Assembly (NCBI GenBank): GCA_002269645.1
Contig: NIVC01001206.1
Coordinates: 1-64,000, forward strand
Direction of reading: 5' to 3'
Origin: Macrostomum lignano
Taxonomy: Eukaryota
DNA: 64,000 nt
Shown here: piece after piece, positions 3,974 to 55,944 of the stretch
Position numbering within the stretch: the first letter of the stretch is position 1
Layout: every line of letters begins with the position of its first letter
Translations under genes and position numbers: made by a program
Notes under the pieces: generated by a model
Seen by the model: only the letters and a program-made list of their open reading frames with translations
The model's database searches: none
Told to the model about the DNA's origin: nothing

Positions 3974-4854
3974 TCACTTGTCTGCGGAGTACTGATCCTT
4001 ATTCTTGAGCAAAAAAGCAGCCAAATATTCAATTGGATTTGGTGGTCGCTCCTTGGATAGCACTGCCAGGCCCTGCAGCAGCACAGGGACCACTGTCTGG
4101 TCCAGGTAGGCTCGGGTTGGCAGGGCTTGAACTGCAACTCTAGGCTTCTTGGCTGAAGCACTTGCAGCAGCATCAGCATGTTCAGCATCTGACATTCGAG
4201 CTAGGCCTTCAGGCACTGTGGGTGGCTGCTGCTGTTGCTCAGCTGCTGGCATGGGCTGATCTTGACTGGCATCGGCTGGGTCTCCAGTGACGGCTGGTGC
4301 GGGGGCAGCAGCAGGTTCCGCTGTTGAATCTGTGGCTAAAAAGTTAGTAATTTTTATTTTGTTACATCATTCATCAGCTTCAGAATAATATCCATATACT
4401 AAAAATGTTGTAAGCTAAAATTGAAAATAACAAAGCTATAAAATATTTACAGCTTGAATATTGCTACCTTAAACTCCAGTACTTTTTCTTAAAAACATTA
4501 AATAAAATCTTGAAAAAATATGAAAAAAATAAGAAAAACTTTTGAATTTTTTTCAGAAAATTTTTGGCCTACATTTAAGATCAACAAGTAAATTCAAGGC
4601 ACTTGTTATTCGTCCACGCCACAGCAATACGAGCTTGGTGTTAGGACTATAAAAATCACAGATTGGTTTCATTCTTACATTCATTGCAAAATAAGGTTTC
4701 AAAAATGGCTCATTTCGAGAGCACAGTTCCAGCGACCAATCCAAGTGCCAGTACATTCACATAGAGTAGTATCAACGTTAAACAAACTCTTTCGGATAAT
4801 AGTCTAAACGATAATATATCGCAAAGCGCAATACTCACTTGATTTAGCGTCCAT
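3974..4854 (-). CDS. DPY30: Dpy-30 homolog (COMPASS/SET1 complex subunit), 2 exons
   Basis: Exon 1 is 4854-4839 (ATG GAC GCT AAA TCA A|gtgagt). Exon 2 is 4335-3974 (ttttag|CC), phase-1 compatible. The C-terminal [42 protein letters not shown] is the Dpy-30 motif. Confidence 0.95.
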
Positions 4855-6133
4855 GTTTAAGCGTTTCTTCGTTCAGTGGTAAATGAAGTAATCCAATTTG
4901 CCTTTTAAGTATAAAAGAAAAAAAGAGTTCTGACGTATTCAAATTTGCAAACATTGTTATGGAATACAAACGTAATAATAAGAATTTTTTTGATTAACTT
5001 TAAACTAAACTTTAAAAAATCACCATGAGCATTAAGTTTCTTCATGTTTTCAATCATAGTTTTCAAACTGTGACAAACGTTTTGTTATACTGTATAAAAA
5101 AATTACAATTATAGTCCGCAATATTTTCTCTTTTATTTAAGCTATGAGCTTAAGCCATGACTTCATTTTTTCAATTGTCTTGAAAATGTTATATAAAGCT
5201 TGTAAGCATTAGTGGTTTATCCTACGGGATTCTTGGCCCTAATGTAATTATATGCATGTACTAATAATATAAGTTCGAATTTCTTGTATATGTATACTGC
5301 ATAAAGGACCACAGTATAAGTAGGACGTAAAACTCAAAAAGTCGTTTCATTTTTTGGAGACCATAAAGTTGCATGCAGTAACTATGAATATATATATAGG
5401 AACTTAGGAACGTGTGTAGGAACTTTATGCATCGAAATGGAATTAATACATGTACCTACACAAATTTGTCTGTTTAGATCGAGTACACTGTATTTTGCAT
5501 TTTGAATACAATTGATTCAAAGAAGAACAAAATAAAAAGTCACTGTATGTATGATTTTTGTATTGTCAGTGTTATTGGCAATGAATGTCAATGAAATTTT
5601 TTTAAATGCAGACAAACAGTAGATGACAAACTATATGACAAATTAGGACTGACATGACAATCCTAAGATCGACATTCATCAGTGTACTGTAAAATGGCGT
5701 TGAATATTTGCAGTAAAACAAGTTGGAGAAATACATTAGGGAATATTAAAGCTGCACGGGGCTTGTAACTTTGATTAGAGTTTTTTATTCTAAATAATTT
5801 TAAATTCAATAATTGGGACAGCATGAATGTACGCGGTATCTATCTGATAAAAATTCGCGATTTCACTCATAGACTAAAACTGAACTGCATGGACGCGGTA
5901 CAGTAGTTGAACTAATCGTATGTACACACATGTATTTAATCCTGAACTGATTTAACCCGGCCATAGACGACGCAGCTTGCAAAATAAAGATTAATCCGAC
6001 TTCCTGATTGGCTGCTAACTTGAAAGAAGTACGTGTAGGGTGATTTAACTAAGGAAGCGGCAGTCGCATTTTAGGCGGGGGCCATAGACAAATCAACACC
6101 AAGTTCTGATCTGGGTTTTCACCACACGGAGGC

Positions 6134-6140
6134 TATATAA
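6134..6140 (+). promoter_or_regulatory. Putative TATA box of knottin-like gene 1
   Basis: TATATAA about 105 nt upstream of the ATG. The equivalent GATATAAG (11068-11075) lies in aligned context upstream of the paralog. Confidence 0.5.
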
Positions 6141-6242
6141 GTTTGGAATTTACTGAAACATTTCTCTGCTCAGCGCTACTTTGGACAGATTTTGCTATCT
6201 ATAATAGAGCAATAATTCAGCAAGCAGCCATTCTTCTTCGCG

Positions 6243-6515
6243 ATGAAGTACTTCATAATGCTGTTAGCCATTGTCATGGTCTTTGGTAAGTTTAGTTAGA
6301 AATCTTAGATGTGTTTGTAATTTATATAAACTATTGCGCAAAATTTTCTCACTGATATCCCCTACTACTCACCCGCCAAAGCAGGTTTTGGATCGCGCGC
6401 TTGTCGGCATTACTGCATCTATAATGGCCGTATGTGCGATACCGACTACAGCTGTTGCTCGGAGAAGTGCAAACGGTCGACACCGTCATCGAGGAAGGGC
6501 AAATGCGTACCTTGA
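6243..6515 (+). CDS. Secreted cysteine-rich knottin/ICK-like peptide 1 (58 aa), 2 exons
   Basis: Exon 1 is 6243-6285 (G|gtaagt); exon 2 is 6382-6515 (aaag|CA, with an in-frame NAGNAG alternative). Protein: MKYFIMLLAIVMVFAGFGSRACRHYCIYNGRMCDTDYSCCSEKCKRSTPSSRKGKCVP. It has a hydrophobic signal peptide, a C-x6-C-x5-CC-x3-C-x11-C framework and one extra N-terminal Cys. ATTAAA at 6644-6649. Missing from the ORF track because it is spliced. Confidence 0.85.
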
Positions 6516-7384
6516 GGCAGCCCGCCTGCATGGTCATGAGTACTATAGCTATGACTAAACCGTTAATACCGACTTAAGAATTTATCATTGTTCTTAAAAT
6601 GTTGCATGAGTGCTGCAAGGTACTTTTTGTGTTGCAAGGACAAATTAAAATGTTTTCATTACGTTTTTGTGTTGTCAAAATTGTTATAATAATATGAGTG
6701 ACGAAATTGAAACGTAGTGATCATCTGAGCAAATCTTTTTGGCTTTTGGGACTTGACATGACTGACAGTTTACAGGGTTTACTGTCGATTTGCCTTTTGT
6801 TTGTGGGTAAAGTTGTTCTATATACATGTATGAATAATTTACGAAAGTCTGGATGTTGCTGCTTCTACTTGTCTATGGTCGGAACCAAAATAATAATGTA
6901 CATGTATTAATCGATTGCATGCAGTTATAATATTCGTGTTTTTTTAATCAAATTTTAACAAACTACGAGCTAACTAAGAGCTAACAGTATATTATTTACC
7001 CCTGCTATATGGGCAGCACATTCAGTACTGTAATTTTACCATAGACTATATGTGGCAGAGCTGTACCTCGGGTTTATGGCTTTTTTAAACTTCGGGTTTG
7101 TGAAATTTCCGGTGTGTGAAACGCCTAATATATAAAAATTACTCAATTAGGGGGGTCAGGGAAGAAAAGAAAAGGAGGGGGTGGAGGTGCGCGACGAACG
7201 AAAGAGGCGAGTTAAAGAGCCAATCAGAAGGCATCGAGGGAGAGAGATAAAGAATAACAAGACTGGGCTAGACAGAGGAGAGGAAACAGATCGTAAACAG
7301 AGACAAGTGAATGCAGATGACTAAACTAAGCAAGTCGCAACGCTAATAGATGAGAATTCTACAGAACCCTATTAGAGTCTCAAC

Positions 7385-7530
7385 TAGGGAATACAATCCC
7401 GGGATTTTGTTCCCCCCCCCACTACCCCAGTTCCCTTCCAACCCTAAATTCTAAATTACAATTCGAAAATCCTGGGATTGACCATCGGGATCCCGATCCC
7501 GCCTTGCAATAATTTAATCATTCATTCCCG
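7385..7530. mobile_element. Possible short hAT-like MITE remnant
   Basis: Ends TAGGGAAT...ATTCCCGA with internal AATCC(C/T)GGGATT palindromes. No TSD confirmed. Confidence 0.3.
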
Positions 7531-10500
7531 AATAGTAGTAGTATCTGCAGCTGAGCTGCTTGTCAGGTGAAAATCACCTACGTTGTCCTACTTTGATTTC
7601 TTAATATTTTAAGCATGCGCAGGCTAGTGAGTAGAATGTTAATACATGTAGGGCAGCAGGGATACAAAACAGAAGCTGTTAGAAGGTCGTAAGGGTATTT
7701 AGGGTGTAATAATTTGTAGATCTATACTTTAAGCAGTCCCTACTTTCAAAACTCCTTGGCCGTACTTGGGATTAGAACAGTGGGACCTTGCTATCGGACC
7801 ACGAATTCTCCATCTAGGGCGGGTGCCCCTGGGAGGGTGAGGTCTGATCCCCTTCCGCGACCCGTTCATTATTCTATGGCCTAAACGAGTTCCGCGATCA
7901 TTGCGTACAGCGTACCGATCATTCCGTACCGCATAGATGTTTTCATTGTTTAGCAATTTGACGATCATTATTCACATTTTTAATGAAAGACTAAAGGGAA
8001 GAGTTAGAGGCTATACGGTCGACCATAGACTATGATTTTCCTATACTAAATTGACTCTTTAAAGGGTTAGTTTTCTAAGGCAGGGCCAGGTTATAGGCAT
8101 ATTTTATATTTACATGTATGTACGAGCATATTCTCAATTGCCTAGTGTATTTATATAATTTATCGTCACTTCTGTTAAATAAACTGTTTTGTCTATGTGA
8201 TGGGTTTCGACCTTCGGGCCTCCACAAGGGGAAGTCTTCGGGCCTCAGGTCTCAGAAATAAATCAATTAGAGACCTGGCCCCCCACTCCTGTCAGATGGT
8301 CAGCCCCATGGTAGCTTGATCGTGTGGCGAGCAGTCTAGGTCCTATAGCTAAGAGAGGGACAGCGAGAGACGAGCAGGGAGAATTTTGAAAGTAGAAATT
8401 AGCTAATCCGCAGATCAACTAACTTGCTGCCACCAGCCCGTGCGCCCTGGCTCACCACACCGGGACTCTCGAAATCGGGCTTCCGACTAGAAGGGGCTTT
8501 GCACTTACCTGCCAACTAGTGTCTTTTTGCTGTCAATCTCGAAGTCATAGCCGATGATAAGGGACACTGCTGGGACTAGATCGCGATTCTATTTTTAGCA
8601 CAGACTAAGCACGTGACTGTGCACGCACTCTGTGCGTGGCCACTGACCTTGAGTCACGCCACTGCTGCGTGACAGGGTTGCCTTATTTGGAAGTTGGCCT
8701 TGGATCACGCGTCGCCCGCATGATTCCAATGCCCAAATAAGGAAGTTTCACGCGCTCACCGCATGAAACTCACGTGACTTTTAGGGGTCCGCTCGGCTAT
8801 AAATACGAAGCATCTGCGAGCCATTTTTCTCCAGATCGCGTCGTCCTGCCTGGGCTCGACCGGAGCTGCCTCTGCCTCCGAGCTCTCTCATTTCAGGTTT
8901 TACAGGTTTTCAGGTTCGAGCAGCATTCTACTAAGACGATCGACTGTCGAGACATTTTTCAGATTTGCCTTTGCTCCGAGCGACTTTGTTATTTTTCTTT
9001 CAGGTGACGGATAGACAACTCTGCCGACGCGTCGAGTCCGCACACCAAGGTGGCAGCAACCCTACCAAGTCACGGCAACGTTTTAGGTTCATTTTCAGGC
9101 AAATCGATAGGTAGTACTCCGATGCTATCTAGCTTCTTCAGGAGCAGCGGGTTTTATTTTCTAGGAACATCTTCGAGAACCCGAGAAGGAGAGGCACACT
9201 TTACAGAAGATATGTACTTTTGGCCTTCAACGCGCCAACTAGCCTCTCATAGCGCTGATGATAGACTAACTCGAACTTCAGAGACCGCATGATTCATTTA
9301 CCCGAGCCGCTTGGCTACCCTAGAATGCACAAAGTACATCTCTGGCGCCGATTCTGCACTTCTGGCAGTTTTGCTCACTGATTTGATAGATTGGTCGACT
9401 GAGAACTGCCTTGCCATTGGTCCACTGTGACCGGCGCCTACTAGCTTAGCTACTCATCTGAGCCATCGGCGAACAAAGAAATAAAACCGATAAAAATAAC
9501 TGTTAGATTTAACCTTCTCCTTAGTTCACTTCACACTTCAGATTGAATTGGAGTCTTAGACTACTAGCAGTATTATTGAATGATTTCTGCCTCAGCAACA
9601 GCACTATTGAACAAAATGAGCAAAAGTGTGCGCCTAATTCAGCTACTGCAACAGGGGACAGATAAGGGATCACCCAATCAAGCAAGTCTAGGTAGCCTCT
9701 CACCCAACCAATCAGAAACTCAACAGCCGGAGACCAGGTAATCCACAGTGACCGAATCGGCTCGATGCTCTGCAGCTGTAGACTCGGGATGATGCTGTCA
9801 CAATCTTCGCTGTTAGCTAGCAGGTGATGCTCTTAACTGGATGTTCGCTGCTGTCGACCGGGGGACTCGTCCTTGATGATGATGGGGGAAGTCGCAATCC
9901 GGGGATCAAGAAACGACGGTCGTGCTCCGGGAACCAGAAGTTGCGCGCTGGGCCCGAGCCAAAGTTGAGTCCGAGCGGGCCAAAAACACCGGTTTAAATA
10001 GCCGCCAACTGGACCGCAGTTTGTTATAATGGAACACGTCGATTCTGATTGGCTGAGCCGTTTTGTTAAAATGAGCGCCGAATTTTCTGATTGGCTAAGC
10101 TTGTTGCCACCCAGAATCACGTGAGACCGAGAGATCCTATTAGTTCCCACAGGGTCGTAAAAACAGGTGACAGGTGCGGCCATAAATCACTCAAAATCGC
10201 AACAAAATGATTTATGACCTTTCGCGTAGGATTGACAGAAATTAATGAAAAAATATACATTAGAAAGCTCTTATTAAATAGAAAGAGAAGATAATGAAGA
10301 GAAATCGCTAATCGCTAATCCCAAAGTACTTTTAGGGGTAAAACGCATAGCTGTCAAAGCTGTCACACGCTTGAGTGAACACAAACAATAGGCTCTGACC
10401 TCATAAATCTTGATGGCCTGTCAAAATGATGAGAAAAAAGCTACCGCCCGCATCCTCTCAGACCATCTGGCGCCCGCTTCAACACTGAGTGAGGCGCAGG

Positions 10501-11173
10501 TGGCTGTCAGACCAACTTTGAAAGCGATGATTTATGACCCAAAAAGCTGCGCCTATGTTATTATGACTACTAGTATGACCAGACATTATATCTAGTATAG
10601 ATTCTATGAAAATTCGCAGAAAAAGGATAAAAATGCACATTGCCCACTTTTAGTAGGCAAGTAAGTTTAGAGCCCATGTGCTAGCGCGGGATTTGGGAAA
10701 AAGTGCGTCCTCATCATATGGTTGAAATGCGCATTGGACGTACCTTGGACGTTCCTTGGACGTTCCTTGGACGTTCATTAGGGCTCGGGTAGGCCATAGA
10801 ATAATGTTTAGCAAACAGTGTGACCAGCTCCTTGTTGACTTTATAATGAAAGACTTGATCAGCCGTAATGAAGCCAGTTGAAATGTCTAGGTTCAAAACA
10901 CAAACAGAAATATTATAATTCATTATATAATTACATTTCTATCATATAATCCTGAACTGATAACCCGAGCATAGATAACACAGCTTGCAGAATGAAGATT
11001 AATCCAATCGAACTGTATTTTGGCCATAGACAATCAACAGCAAACTCTTTCCACACTAGACAGAGCCGATATAAGTTTGGTATTTATACTGAAACAATTC
11101 TCTGCATACACAACCCTAGCTATACTAGATTTTGCGTTCTAAAGCAACAAGCAAGCAGACCTACTTCTTTGCG

Positions 11174-11473
11174 ATGAAGTACTTCATAATGCTGTTAGCC
11201 ATTGTCATGTTCTTCGGTAAGCTCAGTTAGAAAGCTTAGATAGATGTGTTTTTAATTCAAAAAAATATTGCGCACATGTTTCTCATATACTACTCACCCG
11301 TCAAAGCAGGTCTCGGATCGCGCGCCTGTCCGCCCAAGTTCTGCACAAAGACCGGCCGTCTCTGCCAGTCCGACAATGACTGTTGTTCGAAAAAATGCAA
11401 CCCGATACTATCGAAGATGGGCAACTGCGCACCTGGTGGTAACCCGCCTGGTACTCAAGAGTACTATGATTAA
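11174..11473 (+). CDS. Secreted cysteine-rich knottin/ICK-like peptide 2 (69 aa), 2 exons
   Basis: Exon 1 is 11174-11216 (G|gtaagc); exon 2 is 11307-11473. Protein: MKYFIMLLAIVMFFAGLGSRACPPKFCTKTGRLCQSDNDCCSKKCNPILSKMGNCAPGGNPPGTQEYYD, with C-x6-C-x5-CC-x3-C-x9-C plus an extra N-terminal Cys. ATTAAA at 11587-11592. Confidence 0.88.
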
Positions 11474-11950
11474 CAAACTATCAATATACCGACTTAAGAA
11501 TTTATCATATTTCGTAAAATGTTGCACGATTGATGCAAGGTACTTTTGTGTCGCAAGTTTTTGTATTGTCAAATTGTTGCAAACTAATTAAAATGTTAGT
11601 TGACTAAATTGAAACTTAATGATCTTCAATTTCCTTTTTTCTTAGCAAGCCTGAGTATACACTGCACACGTAACAGTAAAGATGACAATTAACCTGCAGC
11701 TGTAGCTAGCAGTAATAAAAATCGTATCAAGCTATGAACGTGCGAAGTACATGTACACACACTGTAGCTGATGAATATTTCCGCTAGATTTTAAAACCAC
11801 TTGAAAGACTTATACAGCAATTGTTACACCGTAAATTTGACACAAATGTTATATAGCTAGTAACCCATCACAAAAAGACACTAATTACGAGTACTTTGTT
11901 TACTTTGTTGCCTGGCATCAGCGGATGATTGAGGTTATTGAGGTTAAAAG

Positions 11951-12690
11951 TCCCTTCCCTTATCTCCTTTCCCTTATCTCCCTTCCCTTACATGCATCTC
12001 CCTTCCCTTATCTCCCTTCCCTTATCTCCCTTCCCTTGTCTCCCTTCCCTTATCTCCCTTCCCTTATCTCCCTTCCCTTGTCTCCCTTCCCTTACATGTA
12101 TCTCCCTTCCCTTATCTCCCTTCCCTTATCTCCCTTCCCTTATCTCCCTTCCCTCATCTCCCTTCCCCTATCTCCCTTCCCTTATCTCCCCTCCCTATTT
12201 CCCTTCCCCTATCTCCCTTCCCTTATCTCCCTTCCCTTATCTCCCTTCCCTTACATGTATCTCCCTTCCCTTATCTCCCTTCCCTTATCTCCCTTCCCTC
12301 ATCTCCCTTCCCTTATCTCCCTTCCCTTATCTCCCTTCCCTATTTCCCTTCCCTTATCTCCCTTCCCTTATCTCCCTTCCCTTATCTCCCTTCCCTTATC
12401 TCCCTTCCCTTATCTCCCTTCCCTTATCTCCCTTCCCTTATCTCCCTTCCCTCATCTCCCTTGCCTTATCTCCTTTCCCTTATCTACCTTCCCTATTTCC
12501 CTTCCCTTATCTCCCTTCCCTTATCTCCCTTCCCTTATCTCCTTTCCCTCATCTCACTTCCCTCATCTCCCTTCCCTCATCTCCCTTCCCTCATCTCAGC
12601 AAAAAATATCTCCCTTCCCTTATCTCCTTTCCCTTATCTCCTTTCCCTTATCTCCCTTCCCTTATCTCCCTTCCCTCATCTCAGCAAAAA
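11951..12690. repeat. 14-bp pyrimidine-rich tandem repeat (CCTTATCTCCCTTC)n
   Basis: Direct reading. Source of the ORFs at 11925-12776. Confidence 0.95.
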
Positions 12691-13101
12691 AATCAGCAAA
12701 AATCAGAATCAGTAAAAAAACTGGGGAAAACACTAGTTTAATGCTTCTGGTGTATGCCAAGCGAGTCTGTCAGTAACTCGCTTTCCAAAACTGCTGTCCG
12801 AATATTCATTTCCCTTTACAGGAATTAAGGGCACAGGGCGCACATACTTTGAGAATGAGAGAAGAACCGCGAAACACTTTTTATGATTTTTCTTGACAAC
12901 TTAAGGTTTGCTATCTGAGCCAGTCTGAGCAGCCTTGGCTTTTGACACTTGACACGACTGACAGTTTGCAGTTTGCTGTCGATTTGCCTTTTGTTTATGG
13001 GTAAAGTTGCTCTATATATGAAGATTTTTACAAAAAAATCAATCTACAAGTCGGAACCAAAATAATCATGTCTTTATCGATTGCATGCAGTTATGTAAAT
13101 A

Positions 13102-14937: not shown

Positions 14938-15636
14938 CTAAACAGAACTAGACAGTGTACTTGGATGCAACAAAAAAACTGTTATTATAAACTGTATAAC
15001 GAAGCAACAAAAAAACAATTTTCTAGCCAAGCCATGGACAATTGGTAGGGTTATATAGGAAGCATATTTAGTTTTTTTCAATAATAGGCAATGCATTAAA
15101 CGTTTCACAAACTCACTTAAACTGAATGTAGATTTTAGCTCCATCAATGATGATAGACTTGACACCGTGGTCAGTAATAGAAGCGCTGGAATCTCCAGAA
15201 GCGACAGGCTCACGTAAAAGTGTTGGATCATCGATACCAAGTTTTTCAGAGTTCCAGGCGGATATTTTTCGCCATTCTCCTTCCTCACCTCAAAAACGAA
15301 GAAGTGCAACAGTTCGTTGATCTCATTCTTTGTAAGCTCTTCGACAGGCTTAATCACCGCGAGTCCTGACAGACGGCCTTGCATTTGCAGTTGGACACGA
15401 TTCTCCTTCCACGTCCGGAACACATTCATCGCCCACTTTTCTTTTGCTCGTGTAGACTCAGGTAAGCTCTCTAGCATTCTGCGCTCCAAAGCGGTCTCAT
15501 CAAGCAACTCACCGAAACGAGAGCTAGGTTTGGTCGGCAGTGTTTTAGCGTTTCCGAGGGGCGGCGGAACTACATTTCCAGCAGGGGCTGGATCGAAAAA
15601 ATTAAAAAAGTTGTCGCTATCAAATTCTTCTTCCAT
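14938..15636 (-). mobile_element. Crypton-type tyrosine-recombinase-related ORF (DUF3504/ZMYM/KCTD1-like N-terminal part), apparently truncated
   Basis: From the ATG at 15636: STRAKEKWAMNVFRTWKENR...ELLHFFVFEVRKENGEKYPPGTLKNLVSMIQHF, matching the F..E.RK.DG..Y.P.TL..L...IQ pattern of this family. Possible donor at 15223. No catalytic C-terminal half visible. Confidence 0.7.
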
Positions 15637-18600
15637 CGCGGTGTGGTTCAAGAGAAAGCTACGAAAGAAGTAATTCGGATTTCGTCTAGCTAGTACTGTC
15701 TTAAATTTATGGAAAATTTGTCTATGGTTCCAATGTGGGGGCTTCGCCCCCACACCCCCAGTCGGGGCTTTGCCGACTGGCTGCACCGCATTCGGCCCGG
15801 CTCAAGAGAAAGCTACAAAAATAAGCAATTCGGATTTCATATAAGATCACGGTAGTTTAATGCGCATTCTATGGTAGAAAGTCCTCGGCCACACTTAACG
15901 GTCCTCGGCTCGCTTCGCTCGCCTCGAGACCATCAAATGCAGCCTCGGACTTTCTAACCCTAGAATGCGCATTAAACATCCATGATTATATACTTGATCG
16001 TTGCAAATGGGATCTTTTACTGCCTTTGATACTTTTTGCTTAATTATTTTACGCTAGTTGATACTACTGGCCACAGACTTCACAACAAAAGTAGTGTGGA
16101 CGATTTTTAATTCGGTTTTCATGAAAAATGCGAGATTGAACATTCTGTATTTATTCTGTGGGGTTATACTGGTCCATGAGATTTGCCCGCCGAAGTTTGC
16201 CCGCAATGCTTTTTTCCTGCAGCGCATTTAGTTACGTCACCGTCACGCGGCAGATTTGTCCGCATTGCCCCCAATGCTTAGTACATGTACATGTAAGTTT
16301 TAATAAAGAGATTTAGGGAACAAAGCAGCATGGGCATATGCATGAATTAGTAGCTCACCGATGTAACCCCGCATGTAAATATAGAAATGAATTTAGGAGC
16401 CAGTAATTCCCCAGTCAGCAATTCCCCAGCCAAACATACAAATTGTATTTGACACCTAAAGTTCGTTGTTATTTTAATGATGAGTTTCAGTTCTTGCTGA
16501 GTGATGAAGCAGCATTCGTGAATGCTTTGTGGAACTCAAATATTTTTGGTACTGCATTTTTCTAACAAACAGAGTGGCTTTGAATCATATTATAATTAAA
16601 TTATATGAAGCTGATGACTTTCTATTTAATTAATGATAAACAGTATGTTTCAATAGATACTAATCAAGATCAAAAAGCACATTCAATATTTATATTCATA
16701 GAAATCAATATGTACAGCAGTTGTGTACATCTCTGGCCCCGTGTGCAAGTTTTGTCTAGAATTAAAACAAAACACAAGTTATGATTTCATGGCTAAAAAA
16801 ACAAAACGGAAACAATTTGACAGACTATCCAATGCAGTTAAATTCCAACAAGAGCGGACATGCAATAAAAGTTACAAAAAATGAACTCCAGAAACAATGT
16901 CTGATTAATTTTTTATCAAACCTTTTGGAAATAAAACTGGCATCGGTAATTCCTTAATCTCTAAGTTATATGGTGATTGATGCTTAAAACAACTCAACAT
17001 TTGAACTGACTAATGGTGGGTGAAAATTTAAATCACAGAGCGGCTCTTAAAGAATTATAAAGCAAACATTATATCTATCTGACTAACTAAACTACTGACA
17101 AAAACCTTAACAGTAGTATAACGCAGAAAAAAATAATAAAACGCACTAGAAAAGTCAAGAAATACTGATTAAAATCAAAAGTATTTACTAATTACGCACG
17201 CACTAAAACCAACACCACAAGCATTTTCAAGATAATATAAGTTATCAGCCACCGTCGCTTGTAGATTTACTGTGCAGAGGTTACTGAAATAGAATTTGAA
17301 GAGTCGCTTGTCATTAAAAGCGGCAGAAAGCTTCAAGTATTGAAACAATATAATTTCGGTATGCAACGGGGGGGCCTTAAGGTCTAAAAGGCCGTTAGTT
17401 GTACAATCTGGCTTCGGCGGATGAATGACCACCCGGTGACAAAGAAAGTTTCATTCAGTTATTGTTTTTTCTTCAGAATCGTCAGTGACACCGGGCGAAC
17501 ATTAATCCGCCAATTAAGCTTAAAAGGATTTCAGTATCAGGCGAATCCTCTTGCAAGCCAGAGTCATCTTTAAAAGGGAATCATTAATAGCTAACTTCTC
17601 TCTTTCAAAGCAATTTAAACGTGAACTTACCATAATTTTATTAATTGTCCGCTTTGATCAATTTTTATTTGGGATATTTAGGTAGGGCCTTTCTTTCAGG
17701 CTATCCGGCGTCCCCAGAATAAGGGGGCACCAGAGGTGAACTGAAGGACGTTAGAGGTCGGACAGTTATAAAGAATTCACAATATATATTATAGGCACAG
17801 CTGGTGAGGGGTCGGACGAATTGGGGGTTGTTGTAATGTACACCCAGCACCTCCACCCCCGCTGATACACGCGCACGAGCAGCCGGCGCCGTTCAGCCTC
17901 CCCCTCCTCCCGCGGGGGGAGGGAATCTTTGCAAAAGGCCCAGCTATTTGGAGGGTGGGTTGTGGGGTCAGTGCGTGGCCCAATAGTGAATCGGGGAACC
18001 CCCATGGCGCGTTCTGTCCATTCCTCCCTCTCCTCGCTCTCCTTCTCTTTCTTTGGTTAAACCGCGCCCCCGTCCCCCTGGCCCTCAATTTTCAACCCCA
18101 ACTGTCCCGGCGTGACCCGGTCACGAACCGAACGGGGGTTACCTAACCACTTATATAACCAAAAACTCATAAGGCAAGCAAAAGGGGTAGAGAAGGAAGG
18201 GCAGAGAATGACCCGCCAGGAAGGGTTTTATACAAGATTAGGGGAGCTTTATACAAGAGTTAAGAAACTGAATAACAACAGCTTATAGATATGACGCACT
18301 CTCATGCTAAGGGTCAGTTGAGGTTAACGCCCTGGCCCTTCCTACAACCCTACTCCGTCCCGTGTAATCCCAAAACTTCTCTCTTAAACCTCTCCGCAAA
18401 GATCACGGTTATATCGATTGAATTGCTATTGATTCTGCTGCAGCGACAAAAGTAATGCCCCGTTTTCAAGCAACTCTCATTGATTTCTTTTGGGTTTGAT
18501 TTTTGCTCAACTCTGGAGGGAGGAAACATTTGATTTTGTTTTTTAAATTAAACTGTACTACTTATTAAGGCTCTTACGAGTGATTGAAGTATATAACATG

Positions 18601-20052: not shown

Positions 20053-20237
20053 GTAATTAGTAGCAACGCGCACATTCAAATCATATATACTTTTTTTCTG
20101 CGGAAAAATTACTTAGCGAACTTCCTCAAACTGTTATAAAACTTCGAGTATATCATAAAAGTTATGAATTTAATATATGTGGTGTGGAATATAAATAATT
20201 TTATAGATTTTAAAGATATGATCCCGTCTAAAAGGAA

Positions 20238-21680
20238 AGAATGATCCTATCTAACAGGGGAGAATGATCCTATCTAACAGGGGAGAATGATCCTATCTAA
20301 CAGGGGAGAATGATCCTGTCTAATAGGGGAGAATGATCATATCTAACAGGTGAGAATGATCATATCTAACAGGGGAGAATGATCATATCTAACAGGGGAG
20401 AATGATCCTGTCTAACAGGGGAGAATGATCCTATCTAACAGGGGAGAATGATCCTGTCTAACAGGGGAGAATGATCCTATCTAACAGGGGAGAATGATCC
20501 TATCTAACAGGGGAGAATGATCCTATCTAACAGGGGAGAATGATCCTATCTAACACGGGAGAATGATCCTATCTAACAGGGGAGAATGATCATATCTAAC
20601 AGGGGAGAATGATCATATCTAACAGGGGAGAATGATCCTATCTAACAGGGGAGAATGATCATATCTAACAGGGGAGAATGATCATATCTAACAGGGCAGA
20701 ATGATCCTATCTAATACGGGAGAATGATCCTATCTAACAGGGGAGAATGATCCTATCTAACAAGGGGAGAATGATCATATCTAACAGGGGAGAATGATCA
20801 TATCTAACAGGGGAGAATGATCCTATCTAACAGGTGAGAATGATCATATCTAACAGGGGAGAATGATCATATCTAACAGGGGAGAATGATCCCATCTAAC
20901 AGGGGAGAATGATCCTGTCTAACAGGGGAGGATGATCCTATCTAACAGGGGAGAATGATCCTATCTAACAGGTGAGAATGATCCTATCTAACAAGGGGAG
21001 AATGATCATATCTAACAAGGGGAGAATGATCCTATCTAACAGGGGAGAATGATCCTATCTAACAGGTGAGAATGATCATATCTAACAGGGGAGAATGATC
21101 ATATCTAACAGGGGAGAATGATCCCATCTAACAGGGGAGAATGATCCTATCTAACAGGGGAGGATGATCCTATCTAACAGGGGAGAATGATCCTATCTAA
21201 CAGGTGAGAATGATCCTATCTAACACGGGGAGAATGATCCTATCTAACAGGGGAGAATGATCCTATCTAACAGGGGAGAATGATCATATCTAACAGGGGA
21301 GAATGATCCTATCTAACAGGGGAGAATGATCCTATCTAACAGGGGAGAATGATCCTATCTAACAGGGGAGAATGATCCTATCTAACACGGGGAGAATGAT
21401 CCTATCTAACAAGGGGAGAATGATCCTATCTAACACGGGAAGAATGATCCCATCTAACAGGGGAGAATGATCCTATCTAACAGGGGAGAATGATCCTGTC
21501 TAACAGGGGAGAATGATCCTATCTAACAGGGGAGAATGATCCTATCTAACAGGGGAGAATGATCCTATCTAACACGGGGAGAATGATCCCATCTAACAGG
21601 GGAGAATGATCCTATCTAACAGGGGAGAATGATCCTATCTAACAGGGGAGAATGATCCTGTCTAACAGGGGAGAATGATC
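20238..21680. repeat. 23-bp tandem repeat (GAATGATCCTATCTAACAGGGGA), about 62 copies
   Basis: Direct reading. Confidence 0.97.
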
Positions 21681-21774
21681 CTCTCTAAAAAGTCTGTTAC
21701 AACAAGCAAATTGGGCTTGAAGATTTTCTTGTGTTTCTTTCGTTGCCAAAGAAGAGTGAATCTCCATCTATTGT

Positions 21775-23346
21775 CTATTTCTGGAACTGTCCTTCTTTGC
21801 TATTCGGCGACCTTCCCGGCGACCTGTCGAGCAGTTCCAGGTCCCCGCTGTCGATTATTCGTCTCTCCAGTCCATCGATAAAGTTGTTGAGCTCGAGTAT
21901 TCGCGATTCCAACTCAAGCTGCTGCTTCTCGGCCCGGTTCTCAGCGTCCAAAGCCGCCAGTTTGGCCTGTCTCAGCCTGTCGAAGGTCTCCTGAAGGCGC
22001 TGCTGCAGTCGCCGATTCTCCTCAGTCACCGTGAGCAGCTGAGTCTGAAGCAGCTGGCATCGTTGCTGCTGCTGCAACAGACGCTGCTGATGATCTGTCA
22101 ACTGCTCTTCCAATTGCTGCTTCTGTCTGCGCCAGTCTTCTTCCAGTTGTTCCAGTTGCTGTTTCTTAGTCTTCTGCCGTTGCTTTCGGTTGCTGCTCCG
22201 ACTGCCAGCTAAGCTGAGGATGCTCAGCCACTTTTTGCCCGATTTCGAAGCCGCTTCGCCTTCATCAGCGTCCAGTTCGACGGTCGAGTAGGATTCCACC
22301 ATGGAGTCTGGGCGGAACTCGCGATGATGAGGCGTTCTTGGAGGCTGGCTGAGTGAACTCAGCGTTGGCGGTGTGCAAGCTGAAAAGTTATGGCATGTGA
22401 TGAGTATGGCATGTGATGAGTATGGCATGTGATGAGTATGGCATGTGATGAGTATGGCATGTGATGAGTATGGCATGTGATGAGTATGGCATGTGATGAG
22501 TATGGCATGTGATGAGTATGGCATGTGATGAGTATGGCATGTGATGAGTATGGCATGTGATGAGTATGGCATGTGATGAGTATGGCATGTGATGAGTATG
22601 GCATGTGATGAGTATGGCATGTGATGAGTATGGCATGTGATGAGTATGGCATGTGATGAGTATGGCATGTGATGAGTATGGCATGTGATGAGTATGGCAT
22701 GTGATGAGTATGGCATGTGATGAGTATGGCATGTGATGAGTATGGCATGTGATGAGTATGGCATGTGATGAGTATGGCATGTGATGAGCATATGATTCAA
22801 TACAATTTGAATATGAAAAAAGTGAAAAGTCTATCTCCGTCGTGCATTTTACGGGGAAACCAGCCTCATCAACATTTTCTTAGAAAGGTAGTTTACCGTC
22901 CTTCAACTTGACTAGTCCTTGGATTGCGCACATGTAAAGCACAGAGAAACATGAAACCTACGTGCGCGGGAGCCATGGTTCTCCGGGTCCGCTAGGGCTG
23001 TTGCACCCTCCGTCGTGGCCTCGACAGTCAGCGGCCTGGGTCGACGGCAGAGTTCGCCGAGATCGCGGCTCAACCGCCTGCACTGCGCGTCGACATCTTC
23101 GACATTGTCAGCGTAGACGGTGGCTGCAGGATCCTGGTGGGCGGCCTCTCTGCCCAGATCAGCCATGGACATCCATCTGGCACTGGTCACTTGCGAAGTT
23201 GTCTGCTTTCGCTTGTTGTTGTTGTTGTTGCTTTGACAAATTTTGCGCCGCAACGATTTGAACATGGACGGGCCGCTGTCGATGGCGAGGACGTTGAGCT
23301 GCGGCGAGCTTAAGCACCGGGATGGCGGCGGCTGCTGCTGCTGCAT
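21775..23346 (-). CDS. Coiled-coil protein of unknown function, at least 2 exons
   Basis: One exon ends at 22962 (C|gtaggt, phase 1) and joins exon 22379-21775 (ttttcag|CT). Glu/Gln/Leu heptad-rich C-terminus. The ATG at 23346 (MQQQQPPP) is the likely start; the frame stays open upstream to about 23491. Confidence 0.75.
22390..22790. repeat. 16-bp tandem repeat (ATGGCATGTGATGAGT), about 25 near-perfect copies, intronic
   Basis: Fills intron 22380-22961. Confidence 0.97.
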
Positions 23347-23411
23347 CTCGGACTCCCAGTGCAGCCAGCACTTGTAGAACACGGCTCCGGGTGGTCTCGA
23401 ACCGCCGCCTC

Positions 23412-26400
23412 CTACACGTCGGATTGGTTCGAGAATTTCATGACGCTCCTCGGCGTTGGTGACGCCGACAGCCAATTGGGCGATTCGCAGGCTGACCTGA
23501 CCGACTGCGGTGCCGCGGCACAGAATGCGGATGCGAAGACGGTCGTCCGGTTCGCTGACGTCGCGGTGTTTTGCTGGCAGGTTGCTTCAGTGTTTAGCAG
23601 AGCGGAGTGGGGGGGGGGTGCAGTGCTTGCTGGAACTCCCGTTCGCGGGCTTTGGCGATGTCGCAAATCAAAAAGCGACAGCTGACCCTCTACCTCTCTC
23701 TCATCTACCTCTCCCCCTTTACATCTCTCTCCCATCTACCTCTCTCTCCCATCTACCTCTCTCTCCCATCTACCTCTCTCTCCTATCTACCAATCTCTCC
23801 TATCTACCACTCTCTCCCATCTACCTCTCCCCCCTTTACATCTCTCTCCTATCTACCTCTCTCTCCCATCTACCTCTATCCTCCTCTACCTCTTTGTCCC
23901 ACTCTACCATTTTCCCCCTCCTCCTCTGTCCCCTCTCTATCTCTCTCCCATCTACCTCTCTCCGCCCTCAACCTCTCTCCCATCTACCTCTCTATCATCT
24001 ACCTCCCCACTCTACCTCTGATCCCACTTTTTCCCCTACCTCCCAACCTCTCGCCCACGGCCCCGAGCAGGCACACGGATACGTACAGAGACGACTGCCA
24101 GACAGTCTTCATTGCAAAAAATGCAGATTCAAACAGATTTGACTCATATAGGCTAGAGATAAACACACAGATAAGAGAGATAAACACAGATAAGAGAGAT
24201 AAACACAGATGAGTGAGATAAACACAGATAAGAGAGATAAACACAGATGAGTGAGATAAACACAGATAAGAGAGATAAACACATAGATAAGAGAGATAAA
24301 CACACAGATAAGAGAGATAAACACAGAGATAAGAGAGATAAACACACAGATAAGAGAGATAAACACACAGATAAGAGAGATAAACACATAGATAAGAGAG
24401 ATAAACACACAGATAAGAGAGATAAACACAGAGATAAGAGAGATAAACACACAGATAAAAGCTAGCTTACAAAGTAGCGGCAGTGTCCCACACTGGGTTG
24501 CCATTGATGGCCTCCACGTCTACAGGTGAGACTCGTTTCTCCCGGCCGAGACTGATCATAACGCGCCATCTGGCGGTTTTGTTAAAATCTAAAATCATTT
24601 TAGACACTTTTTATTACACTGCTGTGTCTCACTAAATATTATCTAAAACAAAGCAATGAAACGAAATTCAGAAAATCAGGGGTCTTATTACTGAATGGCG
24701 ACGTCGGAACGCGAAGTCCCACTGCTCGAAAAACTGTAATTATGAATGGAATGATTGTCATGGAAACTACTATTGATAATACCGGGTGTACTTTTTGCAG
24801 TTCAATTGGCACATAGAATTTACAACTATAGGCTTCGTTGGATGTGTTGATCGAGAGGTAGGTTCCTTGAAGGAGAGTATTGAGCTAGAGAGAGAGGGAA
24901 AGGAAGGTAAAGGGAATAGGGAGATAGAGACGGAGAGAGGTTGAGAGGGACGTAGGTAGAGAGGAGAGAGTTAGAGGGGAGAGAGGAGGTGGGGGTAGAT
25001 GTAGATGGAGTGAGAAAGTTAGATGGGAGAGAGATAGATGGGAGAGAGGTAGATGGAAGAGAGGTAGATGGGAGAGAGGTAGATGGGAAAGAGATAGATG
25101 GGAGGGAGGTAGATGGGAGAGAGGTAGATGGAAGAGAGGTAGATGGGAGAGAGGTAGATGGGAGAGAGAGGTAGGGGGAGAGAGAGTTAGAAGGGAGAGA
25201 GATAGATGGGAGAGAGATAGATGGGGGAGAGGGATAGATGGGAGAGAGATAGATGGGGGAGAGAGATAGATGGGAGAGAGAGGTAGATGGGAGAGAAGTA
25301 GAGGGGGAGAGTGGTAGATGGGAGAGATAGATGGGAGAGAGGTAGATGGGAGAGAGGCACAGGGGAGAGAGGTAGATGGGAGAGAGGTAGATGGGAGAGA
25401 GGTAGATGGGAGAGAGATAGATGGGAGAGAGGTAGATGGGAGAGAGTTAGATGGGAGAGAGGTAGATGGGAGAGAGGTAGATGGGAGAGAGGTAGAGGGG
25501 AGAGGGAGAAATAGACTGAGAGTGTTAAGAAGCAATACCAATCTATGACCCCCCTAGTCTCAAGCTGTGCTAAATTCTAAGAAAGTCGCAGGTGTGCAAC
25601 AGACAAGCAGCTTCACTCACCAATAACGGTGACCGCAGCGCCAGGCTGCCAGCCAGGAGGGCAGTCGCTGTTCATGTTTTCAGAAACCCACAGAATCCGA
25701 CACAACTAAGCCGGTATTTTATACAAGTGTAGCATGAGCCACGGCAGTCTAAATCTTGCAATTAATATCAATTAATGTTTTTCTAGCTCTTGTTAGACCG
25801 AAAATGACATTCGATACAATTAGTTAGTTAACTTTTCGCAAGTTGGAATTGGCGCTGTATGAATTACACTCGTCAGGTGTAACTATAATACTCAATGGAA
25901 TTAAACTAATGAAGCTAGCGTGAGTCATCTGCATGCAACGAAGTCCATTGGTGTATTAAATTATGCCAATTTTGGTTACTTGTGTAATATTTGCACTATA
26001 AAGTTTACTCGTTAGACAGATTTATGTATATTGTGCTTGAATCTCCCTTCGCCCGCCGACATTTTCCCACCGACTCTTCCCTAACGACATTTACCCAACG
26101 ACATTTTCTAACCGTCATTTACCCACCGACATGTAACCAACGACATGAACTCACTGACATTTACCACCGACATTTACCACCGACATTTACAATCCGACAT
26201 TTACAATCCGACATTTACCCTCCGACATTTACCCTCCGACATTTACCCTCCGACATTTACCCTCCGACATTTACCCTCCGACATTTACCCTCCGACATTT
26301 ACCCTCCGACATTTACCCTCCGACATTTACCCTCCGGCATTTACACAACGAAATTTACCCACCGACATTTACCTACCGACATTTAGCAACCCACATTTAC

Positions 26401-29097
26401 TCACCGACACTCACCTTCGACATTTACTCACCGAAATTTACTCACCGACATTTACCCTCCGACATTTGCCCACCGCAATTCATAGATCAATTTTAGCTTA
26501 GCCTAAAGAGTTTTCGCTTACGACGTACATGTAATTTACTGTCCTATGCGAGAATACTGTCCTTTGCTCTTATAGACGGACTCCATAATTCTGTATTTGA
26601 GCTTTCTTATGTAGACTCCATTTTTTGGGACGTTTGCCTGTGGGAAGTTTGCCAGCTGACGTTTGCCAGCCGACGTTTGCCTGCGGGACGTTTGCCTGCC
26701 GACGTTTGCCTGTGGGACGTTTGCCAGCCGACGTTTGCCAGCCGACGTTTGCCAGCCGACGTTGCCAGCCGACGTATGCCTGCGGGACGTTTGCCAGCCG
26801 ACGTTTGCCAGCCGACATTGTCAGTGATACTGAATTTGATACTGAAATATTTTCAGTTTAGCCGTTTGAAAAAAAACGGTTTTTTAGTCCAACTTTTTAA
26901 CGATTATTCGCATGTATAAAAGTTCCGAAAGCAAAATCTATGCAAATTATGCAGTTCATCAGTCTAGCATCCAGTTTAACAACAATTTCTTTGAATGTGA
27001 AAATATTATAAAGTTTACTTCTGAGTTAAGCATATATAGGCGAGACTAGGCCAATACCATTATGGATGTCTCAGTCTTTTCCCATTTAGCTTGTAAGCAC
27101 TTAGCTTGTTTGGCCACTGAGATGGAAAATGTCCATTCCATGGCATTCATAGATATCAACCGTGACAATGGAAACTCCTATTTTGTATTTTTACCTTTCT
27201 ATTTAGGCAGACAAGAGCAATAACTTCAATAAGCCTGAACAGTAGTTTGTTAGTAACCTGTATATTTAATAGCAGTAGTAGGGAGCGAGGTGAAATTAGA
27301 TTAGTGCTGTGTCCACAGCTTTCAAATGCAAATACATGTAAGCCTAGAGAGGGCGTACTTCTTTCACCAATTGCCGCCTGCAAATGTCCGGCAGGCAAAC
27401 GTCGGCTGGCAAACGTCCGGCAGGCAAACTTAGTAGACCCATTTCTTTACTTCAAAGAAGCTTCAACAAGACAAAACTGTTTACTTAAAAATTGCTGACC
27501 CCGTTACTTAGAGTTACGGGAAAATTATCATTCCAAGTTGCCTGCTATAAAACAGATTTCATTCTCCTTGGCATAAACAGAAATACATATTTATTTTCAG
27601 CTACTGCAAGTAGTTAGCAATAATTCCAAATTAAATACATGTGACACATTTTACAGAGTTCATAACGCCAAATATTCTCTCGTGTTAAACAAGAAAGTAA
27701 AAAATATAGGCTAGGAAAAGTGTGTGGCAGGCAAAAGTCGGCGGGCGAATTTCGTTGGGCAAATGTCGATAGGTAAATGTCGGTGGGTAAATGTCGATAG
27801 GTAAATGTCGGTGGGTAAATGTCGATAGGTAAATGTCGGTGGGTAAATGTCGATAGGTAAGTGTCGGTGGTTAAATGTCGGTGGGTAAATGTCGGTGGGT
27901 AAATGTCGGAGGGTGAATGTCGGAGGGTAAGTGTCGGTGGGTGAATGTCGGTGGATGAATGTCAGTGGGTGAATGTCGGTGGGTAAATGTCGATAGGTAA
28001 ATGTCGGTGGGTAAATGTCGGTGGGTAAATTTCGGTGGGTAAATGTCGATAGGTAAATGTCGGTGGGTAAATGTCGATGGGTAAATGTCGGTGGATAAAT
28101 GTCAGCGGGTAAATGTCGGTGGGTAAATGTCGGTGGGTAAATGTCGATAGGTAAATGTCGGAGGGTGAATGTCGGAGGGTAAGTGTCGGTGGGTGAATGT
28201 CGGTGGATGAATGTCGGTGGGTGAATGTCGGTCGGTAAATGTCGGTGGGTAAATGTCGATAGGTAAATGTCGGAGGGTGAATGTCGGAGGGTAAGTGTCG
28301 GTGGGTGAATGTCGGTGGATGAATGTCGGTGGGTGAATGTCGGTCGGTAAATGTCGATAGGTAAATGACGTTGGACAAATGTCGGAGGGTAGGGTCGGTG
28401 AGTAAATGTCGATAAGTAAATGTCGGTGGTTAAATGTCGGAGGGTAAATGTCGGTGGGTCAACGTCGGTGGGTAAGTGTCGGTGAGGTACGGCGGGTGTA
28501 TGTCGATGGGCAAAATTCCGGCATGCAAACACTCTTCATTTTCATTATCAACTTCCTCTCCCTCTCGCCCCCCCCGCTCCGCCTGCCACTCTGTCCATAG
28601 CTGTAATTATATAATGTCCCTGATTGAAATTTTTCTTGTATTATTGAACAATAGTTCCCCAAGTTCATGTTTTGTATTCGGCAGCCCATTCATACAGGTA
28701 TTTTGTTGCTCAGAAATTTGATGCGGGAAAATCCATGCAAGCTGGCGGGTGAGCAGTTCCCGTAGAGGATTATCGCCCCTATCCCTATGCCAAGTTCGAA
28801 TTTCTAAGACTCAGTCAGCTGAGGGTGCGAAAACAGATGGGGAACGAAAACAGGGGGAGCCGATAGAGAGAGGATAAATTTCCTTTTTTCATTTATTATT
28901 ATCCCAGCACTGAGAACCAACTCATCTAAAACACAGTCGCTAATCCTCGAATACACAGCCTGAGCGGGTCTGAGTCTTCGTGGGGATTTTCTCCCCCCCC
29001 CCTCCCCTGACCTAAACTGACCCCAGAGCGGCCCTCGTGGCACACTTACCGGATACTCGTCCAGTCAGAGATATAGAGGCCTGGCAATGCGATATAT
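23412..29097 (-). CDS. Candidate micro-exon gene of unknown function
   Basis: Phase-compatible GT-AG exons: 29097-29050, (27234-27195), 25706 or 25667-25621, 24519-24471, 24094-24040, 23681-23412. They give ...LPGLYISDWTSIR...DCPPGWQPGAAVTVIDVEAINGNPVWDTAATFRLC...WELSLFDL.... Donors are good (gtaagt, gtgagt, gtaagc, gtaggg); the last acceptor is purine-rich and weak. Confidence 0.35.
23690..24035. repeat. CT-rich repeat (CTACCTCTCTCCCAT)n
   Basis: Direct reading. Reverse complement of the array at 24890-25510. Confidence 0.9.
24150..24460. repeat. 19-21-bp repeat (AGATAAGAGAGATAAACAC[AC])n
   Basis: Direct reading. Confidence 0.92.
24890..25510. repeat. GA-rich 15-bp repeat (GATGGGAGAGAGGTA)n
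   Basis: Direct reading. Confidence 0.92.
26050..26470 (+). repeat. 14-bp minisatellite (CCGACATTTACCCT/A)n
   Basis: Direct reading. Inverted partner at 27725-28515. Confidence 0.92.
26628..26818 (+). repeat. 14-bp minisatellite (GACGTTTGCCAGCC)n
   Basis: Direct reading. Short inverted partner at ~27380-27430 (GGCAAACGTC...). Confidence 0.9.
27725..28515 (-). repeat. 14-bp minisatellite (AAATGTCGGTGGGT)n, reverse complement of 26050-26470
   Basis: Direct reading. Confidence 0.92.
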
Positions 29098-30954: not shown

Positions 30955-33870
<2,916 letters not shown>

Positions 33871-54669: not shown

Positions 54670-55944
54670 TCTGATTGTCGGGAAAGTTCTTTTACATGTA
54701 CATTCCAGAACATTCTATTTGTGCTTGTTCTTGGAACATTCTGGAAAATTCTCGATGTAATGTGCATATAAATAGTGAATAGTGTGCATACAAAAACTAC
54801 AATAGATACATGTAAACATTCTTTGCTTGACTATCTGAAATGGCAAAAGATACTCTGCTCTCGAAAGACCTGCAGCGCATGCTGCTTCTCTACGACTTTC
54901 GCTCTGGCAAGAGTGCAAGTCAGTTGGCCACCCACATCAATCCTGCATTATGTGCGGGAACCCTCACTCATCAGACTGCCAACAATTGGTTCAGGCGATT
55001 CAAAGATGGGGATGAGGGCCTCAAATACAAGCCACGCAGTGGCCGGCTGGCAGAGCTCAACGACAGTGCACTTGAGCAGCTGCTTGAGTGGGACACCCGG
55101 CAGACTACACGTGAGCTGGTGGCACAGCTGGGTGTGCATCACTCAACTGTTGCTGACCACCTTCACCGTCTGAACAAGAAGCCAAAGCTGGGATGTTGGG
55201 TGCCCCACCAGCTGACCGCCACTGACATGGACTGGTGCATTGAGGCCGCCCTCACCATGCTCTCCCGATCTCACTGTCCGGATTGGCTAGATGATGTGGT
55301 GACAGGTGACAAAAAATGGTGCCTCTATGTCAACATCCAACGCAAGCAACAGTGGGTTGATTCTGATGCAAAGCCAGAGCGAGAGGCCAAGGCTGAGCTG
55401 CACCCCAAGAAGGTCATGCTTTCAGTCTTCTGGGACAAAAGGAATAACAATGTGGGAGCTGCTGCCGAAGAACAAGAGCATCAATGCTGCCTTCTACCAG
55501 GAGCAGCTTGAGTGCCTGCAGCAGAAGCTGGCTGAGGTGTGCCCTGAACATCGCCAGGTCATCTTGCTGCACGATAATGCACCTGCACATAAGACACAGT
55601 CGACCCATCAGAAGCTGCTCGAGCTGGACTGGGAGATTCTTCCCTATTCACTGTACAGCCCAGATCTTGCACCCACTGATTATCACCTGTTTGCTGCCCT
55701 CGACCATTCTATGGCTGGCAAGGAGTTCAATGATGAGGATGACCTGAAGACCTACCTGACAAACTTCTTTGAGGGCCAGCGCCCAGAGTTCTACAGCCAG
55801 GGCATCTGCTCCTTGCACACACACTGGCAGAGGGTTATTGACCATGATGGTGACTACATTTAAGATTGATAAACCCATTGTCTAGAAAAGTGTTACATTT
55901 AATAAAATTTTGACAAATGTAAAAATTTTTTCCTAACAATCAGA
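54670..55944 (+). mobile_element. Mariner (DD34D) transposon, full length (1275 bp)
   Basis: TIRs TCTGATTGTCGGGAAA and TTTCCTAACAATCAGA, with TA on both sides (54668-69, 55945-46). It encloses the transposase remnant. Confidence 0.92.
54840..55863 (+). pseudogene. Mariner transposase with one frameshift
   Basis: Contains WVPHQLT, TGDKKW, HDNAPAH and YSPDLAPTDYHLF, with 34 residues between the second and third Asp. The frame switches near 55436-55445 (FWD|KGITMWELL). Confidence 0.93.

Follow-up and report, generated by a model that had tools for sequence, protein, structure and literature searches.

A tandem pair of two-exon genes for predicted secreted, seven-cysteine knottin-like peptides in the flatworm Macrostomum lignano

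The first 64,000 nucleotides (nt) of contig NIVC01001206.1 of the Macrostomum lignano assembly GCA_002269645.1 (hereafter the window) carry a tandem pair of paralogous genes on the + strand, gene A at 6243–6515 and gene B at 11174–11473, each with two exons and each encoding a short cysteine-rich peptide with the loop spacing of knottins. A preliminary description of this DNA had proposed two such genes with a common signal-peptide exon, phase-1 intron, TATA-like box and ATTAAA signal, and all four were located in both copies; the lengths it gave for the products (58 and 69 residues) included the stop codon, and the spliced peptides are 57 and 68 residues long. The features of the two copies are as follows.

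5934–6133, + strand: candidate promoter elements of gene A, in upstream blocks also conserved in copy B
6134–6141, + strand: TATA-like box of gene A, TATATAAG, 109 nt upstream of the ATG and conserved in copy B
6243–6285, + strand: coding part of gene A exon 1, 43 nt, encoding the putative signal peptide MKYFIMLLAIVMVF and the first base of Gly15
6286–6384, + strand: gene A intron, 99 nt, phase 1, GTAAGT...AAAGCAG
6385–6515, + strand: coding part of gene A exon 2, TGA stop included, encoding the predicted end of the signal peptide (GFGSRA) and a 37-residue Cys-rich peptide, CRHYCIYNGRMCDTDYSCCSEKCKRSTPSSRKGKCVP
6566–6649, + strand: conserved block in the 3' untranslated region (3'UTR) of gene A (6566–6627, 90% identical to B), with ATTAAA at 6644–6649
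10944–11068, + strand: conserved blocks upstream of gene B, resembling copy A
11069–11075, + strand: TATA-like box of gene B, ATATAAG, about 105–110 nt upstream of the ATG
11174–11216, + strand: coding part of gene B exon 1, encoding the putative signal peptide MKYFIMLLAIVMFF and the first base of Gly15
11217–11309, + strand: gene B intron, 93 nt, phase 1, GTAAGC...AAAGCAG
11310–11473, + strand: coding part of gene B exon 2, TAA stop included, encoding GLGSRA and a 48-residue peptide, CPPKFCTKTGRLCQSDNDCCSKKCNPILSKMGNCAPGGNPPGTQEYYD
11486–11592, + strand: conserved 3'UTR block of gene B (11486–11547), resembling A, with ATTAAA at 11587–11592

The two copies match in every part of this layout. 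Their ATG-initiated 43-nt exons differ at only two of 43 bases and both end in G directly followed by GTAAG, a common acceptor, CTACTCACCCG(C/T)CAAAGCAG, closes the intron 99 (A) or 93 nt (B) after exon 1, and in both genes the codon for Gly15 is split by this phase-1 GT..AG intron. Splicing yields MKYFIMLLAIVMVFGFGSRACRHYCIYNGRMCDTDYSCCSEKCKRSTPSSRKGKCVP for peptide A and MKYFIMLLAIVMFFGLGSRACPPKFCTKTGRLCQSDNDCCSKKCNPILSKMGNCAPGGNPPGTQEYYD for peptide B. Upstream, 5934–5997 and 10944–11005 match at 84% of positions, with GGCCATAGAC..AATCAACA common to both regions, and at the other end the distance from the stop codon to ATTAAA is 129 nt in A and 114 nt in B.

The N-terminus of both products plausibly acts as a signal peptide, as read from sequence features rather than from a dedicated predictor: a basic n-region (Lys2) is followed by a hydrophobic stretch at residues 3–16, with a mean Kyte-Doolittle hydropathy of about 2.6 (2.66 in A), and by Ser-Arg-Ala, which places small residues at -3 (Ser) and -1 (Ala) before Cys21. 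The first cysteine directly follows the predicted cleavage site and there is no pro-region. The mature peptides share a framework of seven cysteines, C-x3/4-C-x6-C-x5-CC-x3-C-x11/9-C (A/B), whose six-Cys core has loops of 6/5/0/3/11 residues in A and 6/5/0/3/9 in B, in the range of knottin spacing and with adjacent Cys III and IV. A first loop of six residues and adjacent Cys III and IV are typical of the knottins of conotoxins and spider toxins (KNOTTIN database, PMC2238874). The core C-x6-C-x5-CC-x3-C-x9/11-C had been recognized beforehand and is present in both peptides, although a seventh cysteine, conserved in both and lying three (A) or four (B) residues before the core, had been overlooked. 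When the window is translated in six frames, C-x6-C-x5-CC-x3-C-x9..11-C as a strict pattern is found at two sites, both of them in these genes, and at none in 100 shuffled sequences. In an alignment of the mature regions each of the seven cysteines is shared but only eight of the 28 other residues are identical, a contrast with a chance probability of 9.6e-4.

Public gene models independently reproduce the splicing, exactly for A and over the first 64 residues for B. Peptide A is 100% identical over its full length to UniProt A0A1I8H5G0 (M. lignano, with the automatic source name 'Toxin'), and a second, near-identical entry, A0A1I8HBK8, carries T47R; residues 1–64 of peptide B form the N-terminus of A0A1I8H9W7, a 511-residue 'C2 domain-containing protein'. 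Residues 65–502 of that entry map to 22192–26831 on the - strand at 72–97% identity, partly as translated minisatellite, where they represent exons of a C2-domain gene on the strand opposite to peptide B; the model is therefore either chimeric or derived from a differently arranged assembly. We also considered that B might be the 5' end of A0A1I8H9W7 and rejected this, as the remaining parts of the protein run along the minus strand from 26.8 to 22.2 kb and B has its own stop, the conserved 3'UTR block and an ATTAAA, as in A. The pair had been described earlier as missed by the track of open reading frames (ORFs) and easily overlooked by annotation; annotation did not wholly miss it, A being in UniProt twice and B being buried in the chimeric model.

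Divergence is distributed unevenly between the copies, with nucleotide identities of 95% in exon 1, 80% in the intron, 90% in the 3'UTR block and 69% in the mature core. Pooled, exon 1, the intron and the 3'UTR block are significantly less diverged than the mature core (Fisher p = 2.6e-4; for the intron alone, p = 0.07). By the method of Nei and Gojobori, the ratio of nonsynonymous to synonymous divergence (dN/dS) is 0.16 in the signal peptide and 0.54 in the mature region, or 0.76 without the Cys codons, and the mature dS of 0.80 lies well above the intron divergence of 0.23. By analogy, a conserved signal and Cys scaffold combined with fast-changing loops is the classical picture of toxins, antimicrobial peptides and reproductive proteins. 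The 62-nt block of the 3'UTR (6566–6627 versus 11486–11547) is itself better conserved than the region coding for the mature peptide, and may represent either a tract of gene conversion or a regulatory sequence.

Relatives were sought by running HMMER exhaustively against 1.84 billion representative proteins (E <= 0.001). The search returned 19 matches, two of them the M. lignano entries and the rest mostly multi-domain proteins, including mosquito proteins named phenoloxidase-inhibitor(-like) or uncharacterised, proteins of Microplitis wasps and unnamed proteins from SRA assemblies, all of them built of C-x6-C-x5-CCS-x2-C-xn-C units. Whole-protein E-values ranged from 1e-9 to 1e-4 and per-domain scores from 5 to 27 bits; since a single domain scores at most 27 bits, the likeness is that of knottin units in general, and summing over three to seven repeats accounts for the low whole-protein E-values. 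A profile-profile comparison with hhalign gave a probability of 97.8%, a circular figure in that the target alignment was built from the matches themselves, and a word-indexed protein search with B alone returned no candidate. Apart from the M. lignano entries, the only single-domain match (P0019) is a predicted secreted peptide of 71 residues on a Logan contig of SRR22388057 (627–842), with the unit C-x6-C-x5-CCS-x2-C-x11-C. As far as the databases show, the pair would be restricted to the Macrostomum lineage.

Spacing and motif together make a knotted fold, the inhibitor cystine knot (ICK), likely for both peptides. This fold is defined by bridges I-IV, II-V and III-VI, the third of them passing through the ring, and has a small antiparallel beta-sheet or hairpin near Cys V-VI. 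In Pfam, B approaches Toxin_18 (PF08087) at 23.3 bits against a gathering score of 24.3 (E 6e-5) and also shows sub-threshold similarity to Toxin_29 and Toxin_27, and A does so to AtDEF-like, Toxin_29 and Toxin_27, with no match to Toxin_18; the Toxin_27 (PF08099) scores of 13.8 and 15.0 bits lie under the cut-off of 25 for membership. A profile search of the PDB with both peptides placed the scorpion calcins maurocalcin and imperatoxin A first (E 0.011–0.016), over the segment CxxxxxLCxxDxDCCSKKCKR. AlphaFold2, run on mature A and mature B with an alignment of these two sequences only, modelled B with a mean predicted local distance difference test (pLDDT) of 63.9 (about 70 in the core), strands at residues 7–9 and 35–39 and a helical turn at 19–23 (DNDCC), and A with a mean of 56.5 and no strands.

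The genes form part of a duplicated unit of about 1 kb (5934–6928 in A versus 10944–13094 in B), and about 4 kb of unrelated sequence lies between the two units. Further copies of the gene were sought in the window and rejected, as tblastn and blastn return A and B alone. Downstream of the genes the unit has two further features.

6739–6928, + strand: downstream end of duplicated unit A, a 74% match to 12935–13094
11951–12682, no strand assigned: minisatellite with a 14-nt period inside the downstream part of unit B, after which the flanking homology resumes at 12935–13094

Homology between the copies also runs past the stop codon of A (6513–6570 versus 11435–11490), whose TGA stands opposite a codon for Gly in B. 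The C-termini read GSPPAWS in A and GGNPPGTQEYYD in B, each directly followed by the stop, and the 12-residue C-terminal tail GGNPPGTQEYYD of B was therefore either lost in A or gained in B.

The wider surroundings are dominated by repeats. Minisatellites are extremely dense in the window: the largest array, at 40033–45195, spans 5.2 kb with 368 copies of a 14-nt unit, about 20 others are present (e.g., 1731–2520, 11951–12682, 20218–21688, 46970–48255 and 60271–61273), and they are the source of most long ORFs in the program-made ORF list. This density fits the published M. lignano genome, more than half of which is repetitive, with 15% in simple and tandem repeats (PMC5730564). Just upstream of gene A, an ORF on the - strand (3974–4252) contains a Dpy-30 motif (Pfam E 2e-19) and probably represents one exon of the DPY30 homologue. 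A 282-residue ORF at 14938–15786 (-) has a near-threshold match to the QRICH1 domain (29.9 against 30.8 bits) and may be a domesticated or transposon-derived gene, and a non-repetitive ORF of 500 residues at 30955–32457 (-) has no Pfam match. At 54840–55863 (+) lies the remnant of a Mos1/mariner-type transposase, split by a frameshift into two overlapping ORFs that match Pfam HTH_48 and Transposase_1. Rfam and tRNA scans found no non-coding RNA in the window.

The analysis shows the gene structure, the paralogy, the organism, the cysteine framework and the pattern of divergence; secretion, a knotted fold and an effector role are inferred, and we consider it moderately probable that the pair are lineage-restricted tandem duplicates encoding secreted, single-domain knottin-type effector peptides. 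Each gene would specify a signal peptide of 17–20 residues, with the phase-1 intron near its end, and then directly a single disulfide-rich domain. The pre-peptide would enter the secretory pathway and be cleaved after Ser-Arg-Ala, and the mature peptide would fold around a compact three-disulfide core, with the unpaired seventh, N-terminal Cys free for dimerisation or some other linkage; that an odd cysteine is conserved suggests such a covalent dimer or linkage. The product would be released as an extracellular effector, most probably a toxin-like peptide for defence or against microbes, or else a blocker of a channel or enzyme. After the duplication, the signal peptide and the seven cysteines would have been kept while the loops between them diverged quickly, as in families of toxins, antimicrobial peptides and inhibitors. 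A defensive or toxin-like role is ranked first for two reasons only, namely that the closest sequence matches are toxins and that the mature loops diverge fast.

A number of results count against this effector proposal. Neither peptide reaches the gathering score of any curated Pfam knottin family, seven cysteines are not the canonical knottin count, the mean pLDDT of the AlphaFold models is low (63.9 and 56.5), and a Foldseek search with these low-confidence models against the PDB and BFVD found no knottin and no meaningful match. The ICK arrangement put forward in the preliminary description is echoed in the spacing and in the DCCS-x-KC motif, which match knottin toxins (sub-threshold in Pfam, calcins in the PDB). 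With a pLDDT of 56–64 and an empty Foldseek search the fold is not confirmed, and the seven cysteines depart from the canonical six. With a mature dN/dS below 1 from two sequences, positive selection is not demonstrated, and the higher conservation of the flanks could stem from gene conversion instead. In the literature searched we found no paper on these genes, their UniProt accessions or any Macrostomum knottin, and look-ups of the exact products (A, the chimeric model and the unspliced exon-2 ORF of B) returned no transcript contig and no other copy. M. lignano feeds on diatoms, and a predatory venom role is therefore unlikely. The earlier suggestion of an undescribed toxin, antimicrobial or inhibitor family stands as far as it concerns real-looking tandem paralogues with a signal peptide and a Cys-rich domain, for which we found no describing paper and in which the non-coding flanks change more slowly than the mature region; no result shows toxicity, antimicrobial activity or inhibition.

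Other explanations deserve consideration alongside the effector proposal. It seems unlikely to us that the peptides are endogenous knottin regulators of a phenoloxidase/tyrosinase or a protease, comparable to the phenoloxidase inhibitor of the housefly, which in a flatworm could control how eggshell or adhesive secretions are tanned by quinones. Phenoloxidase inhibitors are indeed listed as a knottin family in the KNOTTIN database (PMC2238874), and the distant relatives include dipteran 'phenoloxidase inhibitor(-like) proteins' (Corethrella U5EN92, Anopheles A0A2M3ZDW9) with the unit C-x6-C-x5-CCS-x2-C; yet these insect proteins are multi-domain where A and B have a single domain, their source names are themselves homology-based, their per-domain scores are only 5–27 bits, with the whole-protein E-value of about 1e-9 coming from the sum of three to seven repeats, and the 97.8% from hhalign is circular. 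Slightly more doubtful is the idea that these Macrostomum-lineage knottins act, through their conserved unpaired N-terminal Cys, as disulfide-linked homo- or heterodimers of the two gene products; such bivalent peptides would serve this free-living flatworm as a calcin-like toxin in defence or as a modulator of channels and would, if true, be the first characterised peptide toxin of M. lignano. We give a similarly small chance to secreted, Cys-rich products that form no cystine knot at all, with another disulfide pattern or as an obligate disulfide-linked dimer of other topology: the odd cysteine count kept in both paralogues, the low AlphaFold confidence, the lack of a structural match and the position of all Pfam knottin matches under their cut-offs are compatible with it, but six of the seven cysteines reproduce the calcin- and conotoxin-type spacing together with the DCCS-x-KC motif, and the extra one lies outside the core.

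Still a little less likely is a reproductive function, with secretion by the prostate gland, transfer in the ejaculate and fast evolution under sexual selection. Small size, predicted secretion, lineage restriction and a fast-evolving mature region would all suit it, and many prostate-limited secreted transcripts of M. lignano are without homologues (PMC5977470); the sequences of A and B, however, are absent from the supplementary files searched of the in situ screen for prostate genes, and nothing links them to any tissue. Finally, we regard it as very improbable that the pair is non-functional, whether the ORFs arose by chance, the duplicates are decaying or gene prediction produced an artefact. 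The look-ups gave no evidence of expression and the UniProt model of B is clearly chimeric, but although about 31% of core nucleotides differ, both copies have kept the ATG, the GT..AG boundaries, the reading frame, the signal peptide and seven cysteines, the dN/dS of the signal peptide is 0.16, and the cysteine pattern does not arise in shuffled sequence.

Very little work has been done on peptide toxins or host-defence peptides in free-living flatworms, and M. lignano is a transgenic model amenable to RNA interference, in which a secreted knottin pair could easily be localised and knocked down. What is new here is limited to the uncharacterised pair, its seventh cysteine and the mis-modelling of B, A being already a public predicted protein. 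The annotation of the locus needs correction, as the public models disagree: that of A bears the name 'Toxin', and that of B continues into an unrelated C2-domain gene on the opposite strand.

Among known systems, the scorpion calcins, which activate ryanodine receptors and penetrate cells, give the best matches to solved structures. The spacing of maurocalcin and imperatoxin A is C6C5CC3C10C, and calcins share with A and B the six-Cys spacing (x10 versus x9/x11), the D-CCS/G-KKCKR motif and a single domain, and A is basic; they differ in their origin in a scorpion venom gland rather than a flatworm, in lacking the extra N-terminal Cys and in that A and B score below the Toxin_27 cut-off, and shared ancestry is not demonstrable. 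The O-superfamily conotoxins (framework VI/VII) resemble the pair in the C-C-CC-C-C arrangement with adjacent Cys III and IV, in tandem paralogues and in a hyperconserved signal peptide followed by a hypervariable mature peptide. Their precursors consist of signal, pro-region and mature peptide, whereas A and B have no pro-region, two exons with an intron of about 95 nt and seven cysteines, remain below the Toxin_18 gathering score and carry a signal sequence that we presume to be unrelated to the conotoxin one. The conotoxin framework noted at the outset therefore does not amount to family membership (Toxin_18 at 23.3 against 24.3 bits in B, no such match in A, no pro-region), and with a different signal peptide, a flatworm host and a sub-threshold Pfam score, A and B are not members of the conotoxin superfamily.

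Insect phenoloxidase-inhibitor (POI)-like knottins (mosquito, Microplitis and housefly POI) have the same unit, C-x2-G-x2-C-x2-(D/S)-x-CCS-x2-C-xn-C, in three to seven tandem domains joined by linker peptides and without the seventh Cys, as opposed to the single domain of A and B. Baculovirus conotoxin-like peptides (ctl) have the C-C-CC-C-C framework as well, as the preliminary description had pointed out; there was no viral match in the BFVD fold search with the low-confidence models, nor any viral protein among the nine for which the origin was looked up. The KNOTTIN database files flatworm sequences as a 'Trematoda' knottin family (PMC2238874), and the exhaustive HMMER search found no trematode protein reaching E 0.001, so that no relation to those knottins is detectable. 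With this pair the known range of knottins could gain a new scaffold. Secreted knottin-like families with a conserved signal and a variable mature peptide are well known as a kind, and on present evidence A and B are an ordinary lineage-specific family of Cys-rich secreted peptides of this sort rather than a new kind of system.

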